Assembly (NCBI RefSeq): GCF_001194135.2
Contig: NC_068995.1
Span: 38,303,999-38,367,998 of the forward strand
Length of the DNA stretch: 64,000 bases
Direction of reading: 5' to 3'
Source of the DNA: Octopus bimaculoides
Taxonomy: Eukaryota
The notes under the pieces are model-generated. The model did not search any database and was not told the origin of the DNA. It saw nothing but the letters and a program-made list of their open reading frames with translations. Position numbers and translations under genes: made by a program. Shown here in pieces: positions 14,046-62,166 of this stretch (position 1 is its first letter; each line of letters begins with the position of its first letter).

Positions 14046-15215
14046 ATGTTTATACTTCAGATGCTTTGGTATATTTTGCTATGTATTTTGCACTCTTCCT
14101 CGAGGGATTCGCAGCGTGAGTTGAGAGAGCTCCTGTTTAAGAATTATAGCAACAATATAAAACCCGTTCTGTACACAGACACAATCATTGATGTGCATTT
14201 ATTTGTCTTTCCCTCTAAGATTTACAAATTAGATTTAGGAGCTGGATTACTTACTGGAAAATTCCTTATTGGTTACAGATGGACTGATGAATTCTTAAGG
14301 TGGAATGAAAGCCAATTTGATAATATATCATCAATCAAAATGCCTTTGAATAAAGTTTGGGAACCTCATGCATATGTGTGTAATGCTGAAACAATATATA
14401 ACGTCAGTACTCCAATACCCGAAGCAGTGATGTTATCCAATGGCACAATAAAGACATCCACTACGTTGGTATATACCATCCACTGTAAAATTGACAATAC
14501 TAAATATCCTTTTGACAAGCAGGCTTGCGAAGTACACATTTGTTTACCGTTAAGTAAACTAAATAACGTGAGAATAAAAACAATTACAACATTTAAAAAA
14601 CAAGTTACCTTAAGAAACTGGAATGTAGAAATAGACAAAGTTTTACAAAATCATAATGAAAGAATATTTTACGCGTCGTGGCACTTAACACTAACAAAAT
14701 TATCAGCACAGTCCAAAATAATAATACTTATTCCACCTTTCTTACTAACATGTGTAACGATTGCTACTTTTCTTTTGCCCCCAGATACGAAACAGAAAGT
14801 CACTTTTTCTACAACCAGTTTTCTATCAATAATGCTTTATTTGTCAAAAATGTCGAAGGATTTAGCATCCCACACAGCCAACCATTCCCTTCTATGGATA
14901 TATGTCTTTTGCTTATCATGCATCAGCGCCATATCATGTATTGAATCAATACTAGTTTGCCGCATTTATGTTTACCAAAAGTGCGAGGATCAATGCCAAA
15001 TGACTGAACGAACTATATCATCGAATGGAGACGTAGATAAAAGTGAAACATGTAACAAACACTTGAATAAGAAATGGTTCGTTGAAAGGGGCTCGATGAA
15101 GAAAAATTGCAAACATTTAAAATTTTTTCAATATAGATATATTGATAAATTCTGCTTGGTCTTCTTCACGTTGCTCTTTTTAATAATAGGTATAATTTTG
15201 AATTCCATTGCTTAG
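14046..15215 (+). CDS. Divergent Cys-loop ligand-gated ion channel subunit, chemotactile-receptor-like (CR-A in this report), single coding exon, 389 aa
   Basis: Uninterrupted ORF. The ORF-track start at 13959 is TTG; the first ATG is at 14046 (MFILQMLWYILLCILHSSS, signal-peptide-like). Contains WEPH..CN (WxP motif), Cys-loop CKIDNTKYPFDKQAC (C-x13-C), M1 (IIILIPPFLLTCVTIATFLLPP), M2, M3 and a C-terminal M4. No vicinal Cys-Cys in loop C. Confidence 0.9.
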   Translation: MFILQMLWYILLCILHSSSRDSQRELRELLFKNYSNNIKPVLYTDTIIDVHLFVFPSKIYKLDLGAGLLTGKFLIGYRWTDEFLRWNESQFDNISSIKMPLNKVWEPHAYVCNAETIYNVSTPIPEAVMLSNGTIKTSTTLVYTIHCKIDNTKYPFDKQACEVHICLPLSKLNNVRIKTITTFKKQVTLRNWNVEIDKVLQNHNERIFYASWHLTLTKLSAQSKIIILIPPFLLTCVTIATFLLPPDTKQKVTFSTTSFLSIMLYLSKMSKDLASHTANHSLLWIYVFCLSCISAISCIESILVCRIYVYQKCEDQCQMTERTISSNGDVDKSETCNKHLNKKWFVERGSMKKNCKHLKFFQYRYIDKFCLVFFTLLFLIIGIILNSIA

Positions 15216-15423
15216 ATCATTCCTTATAAAACGTTCAGAGTAACATTAAGTGTCGCATATTAAATACTTTATGTTGTGTATCACTAGTTACATACATCCA
15301 AATGTTTACTGTTAATTGTTATTATTCTTACTGTTATAATAACTATTATAACCATTTTTCTTGCTGTTGTGGTTGTTGCTCATTTTGTCGTTATTGTTGT
15401 TGTGATTATTGTTATCATTATTA

Positions 15424-15600
15424 AGGTAGCGAACTGGCAGAATCGTCAGCAGGTCAAGCAAATTGCTTAACGGCATTTCATTCGATTCTACGTTCTGAGC
15501 TCAAATTTCCCCGATGATGACTTTGCTTTTCATCCTTTCAGATTCGGTTAAAAAAAAAAAAAAAAAAACATATTGGCTTAATGTTATAGACCGACCCCAC
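15424..15600 (+). mobile_element. SINE, second family, just 3' of CR-A
   Basis: GAACTGGCAGAATCG A-box-like head and the family body. Confidence 0.7.
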
Positions 15601-16000
15601 TCCGGAATTTTGGCCTTGTACCAAATTTTAAAGTCCTTCTTCTTCTTCTTCTTCTTNNNNNNNNNNNNNNNNNNNNNNNNNNNNNNNNNNNNNNNNNNNN
15701 NNNNNNNNNNNNNNNNNNNNNNNNNNNNNNNNNNNNNNNNNNNNNNNNNNNNNNNNNNNNNNNNNNNNNNNNNNNNNNNNNNNNNNNNNNNNNNNNNNNN
15801 NNNNNNNNNNNNNNNNNNNNNNNNNNNNNNNNNNNNNNNNNNNNNNNNNNNNNNNNNNNNNNNNNNNNNNNNNNNNNNNNNNNNNNNNNNNNNNNNNNNN
15901 NNNNNNNNNNNNNNNNNNNNNNNNNNNNNNNNNNNNNNNNNNNNNNNNNNNNNNNNNNNNNNNNNNNNNNNNNNNNNNNNNNNNNNNNNTATCATTATTA

Positions 16001-16185
16001 AGGCGGCGTGCTGGCAGAATCGCTAGCACGCCTCGGGCGAAATGCTTAGCGGTATTTCGTCTGCCACTACGTTCTGAATTCAAATTCCGCCGAGGTCGAC
16101 TTTGCTTTTCATCCTATCAGGGTCGATTAAATAGGAACCAGTTTCGCACTGGGGTCGATGTAATTGACGTTATCCCTTTCCCCAA
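16001..16185 (+). mobile_element. SINE, second family
   Basis: GGCGGCGTGCTGGCAGAATCGCTAGC...AATTCAAATTCCGCCGAGGTCGAC. Confidence 0.8.
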
Positions 16186-59205: not shown

Positions 59206-59399
59206 TAATGACAAAGAAGAAAATCGCCAATAATTTGAGTTGCGAGGTAATGTTTGGAAAGACTAACACATGGTGTCCTGAAATTAAGACAACGAAGTCT
59301 CGATCTTTAATAACTGACAATGAATGTGATAAGATATGAAGATTATATATAATTATAGAATATTAATGTGTGTACTTTCTGTTTCGGACTAAAGTCAAT

Positions 59400-59800
59400 T
59401 AGATAATGGCTATACAACGAAATACAATCCTAACCCTCCACAAGGACAAAAGTATCGCAGCAATAGCAAACAAGCTTAAAATTAAGAAAATAACAGTCTG
59501 GAAAATTGTCAAGAAATTGAAATAGTCTGGTTCCATCACCAGTCGACCTGGACAAAAGTAGTGTCCGGGCGCCTCAGCCTATCAGATGTTCTAGAGAAAT
59601 GATACGCCGAAATTCTCATTGTTCCGTCAATAAAACTGGCTCTCACAGCAAAAGTAAGACGAACATCGATCTATCGAATGTTGTAGAAAAATCTCAGGAC
59701 TTACCACTAGATGATCTGTCGTTACGAGCTCATATATTTTTATAAGGCCATGAGATTAGAGATAAGAACACATGCAGACAGGCACTTCCGTGAAGAAACA
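59400..59800 (+). mobile_element. Tc1-like transposase N-terminal fragment between CR-D and CR-psi
   Basis: MAIQRNTILTLHKDKSIAAIANKLKIKKITVWKIVKKLK*SGSITSRPG is a paired-like HTH followed by a GRP-like motif, with stops. Confidence 0.55.
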
Positions 59801-61068
59801 TCTACGAAAATGCTAGACCCGAGAGCTCACAGTGCATATCATGGCAATACAGCGCAACAGAGGCAACCTTAGAATCTCCGAAGACATATATAATTTTTTC
59901 ATGTATGTAACATTGTCTGACATTTTCATCTTGAAATAAATTGTGTTCAAGAGTTTTGTATCTAACGTCGTAAGGACTACTCAAAAAACATGCTTTCCCA
60001 ACGAGCGGTACTCCACGTGAGTGAGACCATGTAGGAGACCAAGCTGCATCTTTGCATGGTTCCTAATTCTACTCTTTAAGGTCAGTATGAGCAGCAGGTT
60101 CCATGCAGATTTGTCGATAACGAACTTGAACCATTTGATCCGTGTCATTTCCTCAAATACATTTTCCTTTGTGATCAGACAGGACAAGAAACGACAAGGT
60201 AAAATATAAGCTTACACACTCCTAAAAACATCAATTGTTCAGTAACCATTGTGTAATCTTCAGTAGTTAGCAACAGACAAAATAATTGTTAACTTTTGTA
60301 ATATATATATATATATATATATATATATATAACTGGAAAATTCCTGAGTGTCCATCAGAAAAGAATATAATTACCAATTACACGATATGTATTTTATGTA
60401 TTGTTTATTCATGACAGATAAGCGAAAATATCTATTACGGCAAGTGATTGTAGTTTACAAGTCTTAAATTCATATTCTATGTTTGACACATTTAAGGCTT
60501 GTGCTTCAAGTATATTATATATTGGCTTATGCATAGTGAGAAAAGTACAGTCATATGAAAGAAAAAGAAAACGTGTGCGACAGTCTGGGAGAGACTGAAG
60601 AACACTTGTTTCAGAACGAATAATTTCATACCTGGTAGTGCACTTCTACATACACATGCAGACCATACACATTATCTCACAGATCCGAAGGCCATGAAGA
60701 CCATCTAAAATGCTACAGACATTTGAATACCTGATCATATATGATAACATTCCTGATAAGGCATACTGAACTATAAGATATTCTTTTGTTTGCATTACAT
60801 AAACACAGATAATCCTATGAAACGCAAGGTAATTGGAACTCTTTTAATTTAGACGTTTATTTATCAATTTGGACAGAAAATAGATTGTCAGTACATATGT
60901 AACTTATACCATTTCTATTATTAGAATACTTTTAATAAAAAATATTTGTCAAGGTCTTCTATACGCTTCACATATATAGGAGAAATATATAGAAAAATGC
61001 AATACATTTGCAAACTTCTAACATGATGCGAAATAACAAAACGGAATATTTCCCTTTAATAAATCATC

Positions 61069-62166
61069 ATGAAATTGATAGTTGCTCTAATGTTTATGTC
61101 ATGTGGAAGCGCTTCTCCATACGAAAACGGCTTTTTTCCCAACGTATTAAAAAATTATCATAAAACAAAGAGACCTATTGATGACGTTGAGAATATCATA
61201 TTCATAAATGTGTCACTTAACGTAAAGCGTGTTATTGAATCGGGTATTAACCAAGTACAGCATAAAATGGATGGTCGTTAATCGGAAATGGGAATATTCA
61301 GTTTATGGTATAAATCATACGAATGTTTTCTTATATGAAATTCAGTATCCTAACATACAAATATGTAATATTAATATCGTATCGGGGGATTTCAGTTGTT
61401 TTGATCTGTTCAAAGTAGTCACTGTCAATGCTGATAGGATCGTTCACTTATATATGGACAAAATATTCAAAACTTTGTGCAGGATTAACGGTAAAAAATA
61501 TCCTTTCGATGAGTACGAATATGATATAACGTTTTGCTTTGTATGTAGAGGAAAACACCTAAATCAAATCAATGGGATTTCAATTTTTAAGAGAGTGACG
61601 GCGAAAAGGAATATATTATAGCAGTTGGTCTTACAGTTCAGGGCAAGAGGAACGTTAGCAGTGTAACAGTAACAAAAATTATACACCCAACAATGTTAAC
61701 GTTATTGATATTTTCTGTCCATTTATTTCCGCCTGCATCTGGAGTCAAAGTTTCTCTTGCAATTATTGTTTTTCTTACAAACATCGTTTTCCTTTCTGAA
61801 ACTGAAAAAAAAAAAAATATTCGGTAATAATTCTCAGGATCCCTCCATATATCTAATATAATTTTTTAATTCTGAAATTTGTCCGGCGAATGTTCTACTG
61901 TCGAGTCAGTAATTGTGTGTACACTTTTTGCTCACAAGACTGGATCGAACATTAATTAAGCTCCAGAAATTGCACAACAATCAAATAGATCAAGAAAAAG
62001 TGTTTGTGTCTCAGAAACCTCAGATAAACAAAATTTTAAAATAAAAACTCTGAATTCTCATCAGAAATATTTTCTAACGCATCAAAAAGTAGACAAAATA
62101 GTTTTGTCAATAATTGTTGTATACCTCTTACTCTATATCATCTTTGCTTTGTCAGACTCTTGGTAA
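61069..62166 (+). pseudogene. CR-like Cys-loop channel pseudogene (CR-psi)
   Basis: Starts MKLIVALMF like CR-D and is collinear to the end. Lesions: frameshifting deletion near 61255; second Cys-loop Cys to Tyr (61520); deletion after loop B; TAA at 61588; GEK to GVK (61744); A6 to A13 run (61805-61817); TAA at 61859; +1 nt in M3. Confidence 0.92.

Follow-up and report, generated by a model that had tools for sequence, protein, structure and literature searches.

A likely part of the chemotactile receptor array of Octopus bimaculoides: four intact single-coding-exon genes and a decaying pseudogene

In a 64-kb stretch of the Octopus bimaculoides genome (hereafter, the window), we found five Cys-loop receptor paralogs, A to E, lying head to tail on the + strand. 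We consider it very likely that the window is a segment of the O. bimaculoides chemotactile receptor (CR) array, made up of four intact genes with a single coding exon each (A, B, C and D) and one decaying pseudogene (E), all products of tandem duplication. C and D map to positions 38,347,048 and 38,362,058 of CM046615.1 (assembly GCA_001194135.2), and the window occupies ~38.304-38.368 Mb.

Octopus CRs have been described as a tandemly clustered, intronless family of 26 members (PMC11526382; PMC13174522; bioRxiv 10.1101/2025.03.03.641191). They descend from nicotinic acetylcholine receptors (nAChRs) and form homo- or heteropentamers activated by hydrophobic molecules (PMC11526382); their intronless structure has been ascribed to retroposition, and their pore motifs have been called mixed (PMC13174522). 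An earlier reading of the raw sequence, made without tools (the sequence-only reading), had recognized a lineage-specific sensory receptor array in this stretch and had stated that the family was already known, as the reviews bear out. The genes themselves are already in NCBI, and the novelty of the cluster is low.

Array composition and family placement

A tblastn search with the ORFs (open reading frames) of the window and a six-frame scan with a profile hidden Markov model (HMM) both recovered exactly five + strand receptor paralogs, which together form an array of 48 kb that runs from the ATG of A to the stop of E (Table 1). The count of four intact genes and one pseudogene given by the sequence-only reading therefore stands. 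The spacers between neighbors measure 22,605 bp (A-B), 4,080 bp (B-C), 13,864 bp (C-D) and 1,863 bp (D-E). No sixth CR copy or decayed relic was found in the window by tblastn with E-values up to 10 or by the six-frame scan with a CR profile HMM, the best matches outside A to E having E-values of 0.28-0.79.

The four intact products have the architecture of Cys-loop channel subunits, and assembly into pentamers is expected from the family. All four match the Pfam domain Neur_chan_LBD at 1e-28 to 1e-32, with weaker matches to Neur_chan_memb, and each has a hydrophobic N-terminus and one C-x13-C loop with a YPFD core. AlphaFold2 models of C and A contain an N-terminal helix, a beta-sandwich, helices M1-M4 and a disordered M3-M4 loop of ~46 amino acids, in agreement with the signal peptide, Cys-loop, four transmembrane helices and short intracellular loop read earlier from the letters. 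Four ORFs of at least 381 amino acids in DNA of 35% GC (35.5% across the window), with E-values of this order and 1:1 orthologs in two other octopus genomes, are not to be expected by chance.

Each of the four ORFs matches the octopus receptor CRT1 end to end, from the N-terminal helix through M4. Since the ORFs (381-389 amino acids, uninterrupted) are collinear with CRT1 over their full length, each gene has one coding exon, as previously proposed; this intronless status refers to the coding region only, and introns in the untranslated regions are possible. Gene C is 100% identical, over the part in common, to XP_014771423.1, listed by NCBI as 'acetylcholine receptor subunit beta-type unc-29-like'. 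That model begins at Met25 of our ORF and ends in a spliced 3' exon (Table 1). Because all paralogs and orthologs keep a contiguous ORF through M4, the single-exon form is the credible product of C, and the splice from 44087 to 44787 is probably a model artefact, although it may represent a minor isoform. In D, an in-frame ATG at 57961 lies 99 nt 5' of the signal-peptide ATG and would add 33 amino acids; the stretch 57961-58059 can be aligned in O. vulgaris (88% DNA identity). This upstream ATG is probably not used. For A, the start at ATG 14061 agrees with the start of its ortholog. Look-ups of the exact proteins matched C and D to the genome assembly alone and gave no entry for A with the start that was searched.

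Sequence searches of the PDB placed CRT1 (8EIS/9E6B) first for both C (2.6e-53) and the divergent A (4.1e-49), more than 25 orders of magnitude ahead of nAChR and 5-HT3 receptors. Squid CRB1 matched at 6e-27 for C and 3e-20 for A, and nAChR subunits and 5-HT3A were likewise far weaker than CRT1. The top Foldseek match of both models was also 8EIS.

For phylogenetic placement we searched with HMMER using a profile of A to D, which gave 9,943 matches, and used the best 150 representatives, cut into single receptor units. This exhaustive search was needed: a word-indexed homology search with A gave only A itself and one ortholog. We added the sequences of CRT1, CRB1, Torpedo beta and human beta4 as read from PDB alignments and built a neighbor-joining tree of 194 sequences and 304 columns with 200 bootstraps. 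A to D form a clade with CRT1, CRB1 and 28 representatives in 188/200 bootstraps. This clade excludes Torpedo beta and human beta4, which group with canonical alpha-type representatives. The sequence-only reading had assigned the genes to the CR family and proposed such a phylogeny; the tree upholds that assignment, and grouping with canonical nAChRs was not seen. Within the clade, B, C and D form a subclade (200/200), CRB1 joins three representatives (200/200), and A pairs with its ortholog P0021 (200/200).

Among the best 150 representatives, 24 (found among P0023, P0024 and P0028-P0059) are models of 600-1,470 amino acids, each with two to six units of a Cys-loop receptor; apparently, gene prediction has joined neighboring intronless copies of tandem arrays in other genomes. 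Most lie outside the CR clade and likewise lack the acetylcholine (ACh) aromatic box.

Table 1. Coordinates of the receptor genes and associated features in the window
Feature	Position	Strand	Description
Gene A	14046-15215	+	Intact ORF, 389 aa; alternative ATG 14061 gives 384 aa; Cys-loop 14484-14528
Gene A M1-M2 mouth and M2	14778-14858	+	PPDTKQK for PPESGEK; -2' Gly to Lys, -1' Glu to Gln
Gene B	37821-38969	+	Intact ORF, 382 aa, one coding exon; Cys-loop 38244-38288
Gene C	43050-44195	+	Intact ORF, 381 aa, one coding exon; Cys-loop 43473-43517; M2 43767-43847
C 3' exon in old NCBI model	44787-44936	+	Spliced from ~44087; swaps the M4 helix for an unrelated 50-aa tail
D upstream flank	57623-58059	+	Paralogous to E upstream flank, ~72% identity, patchy to ~1.1 kb
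Gene D	58060-59205	+	Intact ORF, 381 aa, one coding exon; Cys-loop 58483-58527
E upstream flank	60611-61068	+	Paralogous to D upstream flank
Pseudogene E	61069-62166	+	D/C-like copy, broken over three frames (tblastn, 61069-62160)

Binding site, pocket and pore

To locate the agonist-binding positions, we marked the alignment columns with representatives carrying all of the textbook motifs (WxPDxxxYN, GSW[ST], YxCC...Y and WxxxxWxD). None of Y93, W149, Y190, Y198 and W55 is kept in any of A to D. Y93 of loop A is Cys in all four, W149 of loop B is Pro, Asn, Glu and Ala in A, B, C and D, and W55 of loop D is Leu, Thr, Ile and Ile. A shorter loop C has lost both Y190 and the Cys-Cys pair, and Y198 is replaced by Ile, Ser, Ile and Ile. 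A to D thus lack the canonical nAChR agonist site, a loss that the sequence-only reading had correctly noticed.

Sequences of the CR clade instead have a different pair of cysteines, one at the Y93 position of loop A and the other two residues before the W149 position of loop B. The pair occurs in 29/32 CR-clade sequences and in 0/159 others; A to D have it, and E retains it. It is a signature derived in the present analysis and not a published definition of CRs. The three CR-clade members that depart from the signature are without both cysteines together, which suggests a disulfide between loop A and loop B.

The loop B cysteine of this pair corresponds to C150 of CRT1, and the CRT1 mutations C150A, F124V, Y58V and L153N abolish responses (bioRxiv 10.1101/2025.10.28.685082). 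We mapped the CRT1 pocket residues on A to D, verifying the numbering offset on 9/9 residues. The equivalents in A/B/C/D are L/T/I/I for Y58, S/Y/Y/Y for W122, T/D/D/D for F124, L/H/H/H for L153 and I/S/I/I for F192; those of the vestibule residue E104, which is linked to Ca2+ permeation, are V/K/S/H. Asp at the F124 position is found in 17/20 members of the B/C/D subclade and His at the L153 position in 19/20. In C, these positions are D134 ('YIDKIF') and H164 ('CFEHQ').

Since F124V, Y58V and L153N each eliminate the CRT1 response and these positions are changed in B to D, these three receptors are unlikely to share the ligands of CRT1. Diversifying selection has been reported for the CR pocket, so family members need not match CRT1 there. 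The pocket of B to D looks maintained yet chemically different, and the generalization of a 'hydrophobic pocket' from CRT1 may fail for the B/C/D subclade.

The pore separates A from the other three genes. B, C and D have the PPESGEK mouth with the -1' Glu ring and the 9' Leu of CRT1 and cationic nAChRs, the features of a cation pore, whereas A has TKQK at -3' to 0'. The 9' Leu itself occurs in all 32 CR-clade sequences, A included. Among 191 sequences, the -1' Glu is found in 179, and the PPDTKQK mouth solely in A and its ortholog P0021. The outer end of M2 in A is Lys-rich, with Lys in place of Glu. The intermediate charged ring of Cys-loop channels has an established influence on conductance and selectivity, so the KQK mouth predicts that one or the other is altered in A. 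Gene A probably has altered permeation or the role of a modulatory partner.

The ortholog P0021, from another octopod, is 71% identical to A (dN/dS 0.45) and is found on ~1.57-kb Logan contigs (L007-L009; SRR11869390/84/94) that end in microsatellites. The homology-search matches included no annotated ortholog of A from O. sinensis or O. vulgaris, so A may be unannotated or lost in those species.

Gene turnover in the array and its surroundings

The intact genes have clear counterparts in other octopuses. B is 84% identical to O. sinensis P0008 (dN/dS 0.67), C is 87% identical to O. sinensis P0001 (dN/dS 0.45) and D is 84% identical to O. vulgaris P0006 (dN/dS 0.68); ortholog pairs overall have dN/dS of 0.45-0.68 at dS of 0.12-0.36. 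Omega is 0.34-0.54 in the extracellular domain versus 0.19-0.31 in M1-M3. O. sinensis keeps the order and strand of B followed by C, with a longer spacer. Paralogs are separated by dS of 0.5-0.9, and their DNA similarity ends at the limits of the coding sequence, except in D and E, which have ~0.4-1.1 kb of upstream sequence in common. As these upstream flanks are paralogous (Table 1), the D/E duplication unit took in 5' flanking DNA.

E is 74% identical in DNA to both C and D and is disabled many times over. Frameshifting deletions remove 23 bp near 61255 and 11 bp and 32 bp near 61539-61554; frameshifting insertions add 7 bp in an A-run at 61805 and 1 bp each at 61860 and 61883. There are also two in-frame insertions (6 bp and 3 bp) and premature TAA stops at 61588 and 61957, and the second cysteine of the Cys-loop has been changed to Tyr (TGT>TAT at 61520). 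The branch omega of E is ~0.85, compared with 0.37 for C and 0.49 for D, and E is under relaxed constraint.

The body of E (~60753-62370) is missing from the orthologous locus of O. vulgaris, where both flanks are present. In that gap-free locus, the equivalents of window positions 60453-60752 and 62371-62527 adjoin each other (L006 15495|15497), which indicates that ~1.6 kb carrying E was excised there. With its decay in O. bimaculoides and its excision in O. vulgaris, E is a clean, dated gene death that could anchor estimates of birth-and-death rates for the family.

The array continues past the window on the same strand, with an intact gene (P0004) and a frameshifted copy 19-27 kb downstream, and an intact gene (P0011) with fragments 133 kb upstream. 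The frameshifted or incomplete copies beside P0004 and P0011 are located at L002 17967-19060 and at L003 1729-2049 and 3519-4362, and some of them adjoin assembly gaps. CM046615.1 also carries the CRT1-like representatives P0025 and P0027. The disabled state of E, its loss from O. vulgaris and the broken copies beside intact ones outside the window support birth-and-death evolution of the array, as the sequence-only reading had supposed.

The window contains 18 runs of N, none of them inside the gene bodies of A to E. The gaps nearest to genes are at 13087-13848 (197 bp 5' of A), 15657-15989 (441 bp 3' of A) and 36960-37175 (645 bp 5' of B), and the six flagged gaps are all intergenic, within the 22.6-kb A-B spacer. 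With no N in any gene body, continuity of reading frames across gaps is not an issue for the coding sequences. The gaps affect only how long the intergenic DNA truly is and what it contains, and an unread stretch there may hide something.

The A-B spacer is rich in microsatellites, which border most of the gaps. It contains an ORF at 29455-29904 (+) with a match to zf-RVT, the Pfam zinc-binding domain of reverse transcriptases, above the cut-off (32.3 vs 27.5 bits) and another at 17653-18171 (-) with a match slightly under it (25.1 bits); judging by this domain, both are relics of retroelements lacking long terminal repeats (non-LTR). A further ORF, interrupted by a gap, lies at 9613-10374 (-) and starts MAAFTNLSEETVQRTCRRFRSLLEAMVEANADFY, which may resemble the C-terminus of a mariner/Tc1-type transposase. 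Scans of the window for tRNA genes and Rfam families gave no match.

Proposed function, competing explanations and known systems

A to D very likely encode subunits of pentameric Cys-loop ligand-gated channels descended from nicotinic receptors. In this lineage, the ACh aromatic box has been dismantled, loop C shortened and the CR-specific cysteine pair of loops A and B gained, with the channel core (Cys-loop, M1-M4 and 9' Leu gate) kept. Extending what is known of CRT1 and CRB1, the products would form homo- or heteropentamers in sucker sensory cells, where poorly soluble contact chemicals would bind a pocket at the subunit interface, open a cation pore and depolarize the cell. Expression in the sucker, and gating by poorly soluble compounds and not by ACh, are expected for A to D by analogy, from their membership in the family. 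B, C and D, with the -1' Glu ring, would be cation channels, and their ligands should differ from those of CRT1 given the changes of F124 to Asp, L153 to His and Y58 to Ile. A, with its Lys-Gln-Lys pore mouth, would have altered permeation or act as a modulatory partner. The history of the array comprises old duplications, fast yet constrained protein evolution, pseudogenization of E and the deletion of E in O. vulgaris. The sequence-only reading was, in our judgment, correct that the ligands of A to D cannot be read from the sequence.

Several observations weigh against assigning A to D to the CRs or against extending the properties of CRT1 to them. The Foldseek lead of CRT1 over nAChRs is small; the search confirms the fold but barely parts CRT1 from nAChRs, and so is not decisive for membership. 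The AlphaFold2 models of C and A are moderate (pLDDT, the predicted local distance difference test score, of 66). Our trees are distance-based neighbor-joining trees and not maximum likelihood trees, and the internal placement of A is weak, with A sister to the CRT1 group in only 67/200 bootstraps. The Logan contigs carrying the A ortholog may be genomic rather than transcript-derived. Finally, the pocket of B, C and D departs from the hydrophobic pocket of CRT1 at 5/9 mapped positions, and because it is unlike that of CRT1, a 'poorly soluble ligand' for these three receptors is an extrapolation.

The alternative that fares best, though we judge it improbable, is that A to D are CRs by descent without being contact chemoreceptors: their expression might lie elsewhere, they might serve as silent or obligate accessory subunits, or they might be nearing pseudogenization. 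CRT1 and CR840 were the first CRs cloned (bioRxiv 10.1101/2025.03.03.641191) and five CRs were screened in 2025, yet functional work has covered only a few of the 26 (bioRxiv 10.1101/2025.03.03.641191; 10.1101/2025.10.28.685082), which leaves room for such members. The high dN/dS between orthologs, the replacement in B to D of the CRT1-essential F124, Y58 and L153, the lack of a -1' Glu ring in A and the old NCBI model of C without M4 could all be read this way. However, all four genes have kept an intact ORF under purifying selection (omega <1, and lowest in M1-M3), and they have intact 1:1 orthologs in other octopods. The B/C/D clade conserves the replacement Asp and His, which argues for a maintained binding site and not for decay.

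Our preferred reading of A to D as CR subunits also has to contend with the oddity of A, which might belong to a separate, divergent nAChR-like ('CR-like') lineage and merely lie beside the CR array. A is 26-28% identical in protein to B to D and ~31% to CRT1, is separated from B by 22.6 kb with six gaps, and has a long branch, a weakly placed position within the clade and an odd pore mouth. 5-HT3 receptors come right behind CRs among its PDB matches, and a wider 'CR-like' clade is known from molluscs (PMC13174522). We nevertheless find this quite unlikely: the CR clade including A is recovered in 187-188/200 bootstraps, CRT1 is the best PDB match of A (4e-49, against 3e-20 for the next matches other than CRT1), A has both of the cysteines that were found in no sequence outside the CR clade, and its strand and single coding exon are those of the array.

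Much less probable still is that A to D are ordinary nAChR subunits of synapses or neuromuscular junctions, as the automatic NCBI names 'beta-type unc-29-like', 'gamma-like' and 'delta-like' would imply. The Pfam domains are common to both groups, Foldseek scores against nAChRs are just below the score for CRT1, and non-alpha nAChR subunits likewise lack the Cys-Cys pair of loop C. The loss in A to D extends, however, to Y93, W149, Y190 and Y198 on the principal face and to W55 on the complementary face, and is accompanied by a shortened loop C, an M3-M4 loop of ~46 amino acids and a single coding exon. Together with the margin of the CRT1 sequence match, the CR-specific cysteine pair and a CRT1/CRB1 clade that excludes Torpedo beta and human beta4, these losses largely rule out a canonical nAChR identity, and we regard the NCBI names as misleading for A to D.

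The repeated copies could in principle be collapsed or duplicated haplotypes in a gap-rich, short-read draft scaffolded to chromosomes (18 N-gaps in the window), but such an artefact is ruled out for practical purposes by the low identity between copies (51-62% for protein, 67-75% for DNA), a divergence (dS 0.5-0.9) far too great for haplotypes, and by a separate ortholog for each copy in the assembly of O. sinensis or O. vulgaris, both of them free of gaps.

With A to D taken as CR subunits, a more speculative extension, which we think has only a minor chance of being correct, is that the window holds two functionally distinct kinds of CR, with B, C and D tuned to another chemical class and A either not cation-selective or modulatory. 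The subclade of B, C and D, which has expanded in octopods, has Asp and His where CRT1 has the hydrophobic back wall of its pocket. This Asp/His pocket could then accept polar or cationic compounds, respond to pH or bind metal-coordinated ligands instead of greasy terpenoids or steroids, and A could be an anion-permeable or purely modulatory CR subunit. If A were so, a channel with an inhibitory or shunting effect would take part in sucker chemoreception.

The CR family is a textbook example of the conversion of neurotransmitter receptors into contact chemoreceptors, and most of its 26 octopus members are orphans. This segment yields four orphan candidates, three with the Asp/His pocket and one with a unique pore mouth.

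The closest known system is CRT1 (CR518; 8EIS, 9E6B-D and 9YI4), a terpene receptor of the same species. Like A to D, it has ~380 amino acids and a short M3-M4 loop, has lost the ACh aromatic box and the loop-C Cys-Cys pair, and has the cysteine pair of loops A and B; with B to D it also shares the GEK/9' Leu pore. It differs in that its identity to A to D is just 30-32%, in its pocket residues and vestibule E104, and in its position outside the separate, fully supported subclade of B to D. The bitter-sensing squid receptor CRB1 (Sepioloidea lineolata; 8EIZ) resembles A to D in clade, fold and loss of the ACh-binding residues, but is a far weaker match to C and A than CRT1. CRB1 and its relatives (P0049 and P0058) lack the loop A/loop B cysteine pair that A to D have, and CRB1 groups apart from them with representatives of decapodiform type.

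Canonical nAChRs (human alpha7 and beta4, Torpedo beta) have in common with A to D their ancestry, the Pfam ligand-binding and transmembrane domains, the C-x13-C loop with its YPFD core and the pentameric Cys-loop fold (TM-score about 0.55-0.65), and with B to D the GEK intermediate ring and 9' Leu. A to D differ from them in having no aromatic box and no loop-C Cys-Cys pair, a shorter loop C, one coding exon and an intracellular loop less than half as long (~46 amino acids, compared with ~100 or more).

Outside the Cys-loop receptors, the insect ionotropic receptors (IRs), derived from ionotropic glutamate receptors, and the trace amine-associated receptors (TAARs) likewise have neurotransmitter-receptor ancestry. 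Vertebrate olfactory receptors (ORs), TAARs and taste receptors of the T2R family, as well as insect IRs, also resemble CRs in forming same-strand tandem arrays of single-exon genes with interspersed pseudogenes, and such tandem chemoreceptor repertoires show raised dN/dS in the ligand-binding domain and lineage-specific gain and loss (PMC11526382). ORs, TAARs, T2Rs and IRs are unrelated to CRs in protein superfamily, and the resemblance is one of functional and evolutionary analogy only.

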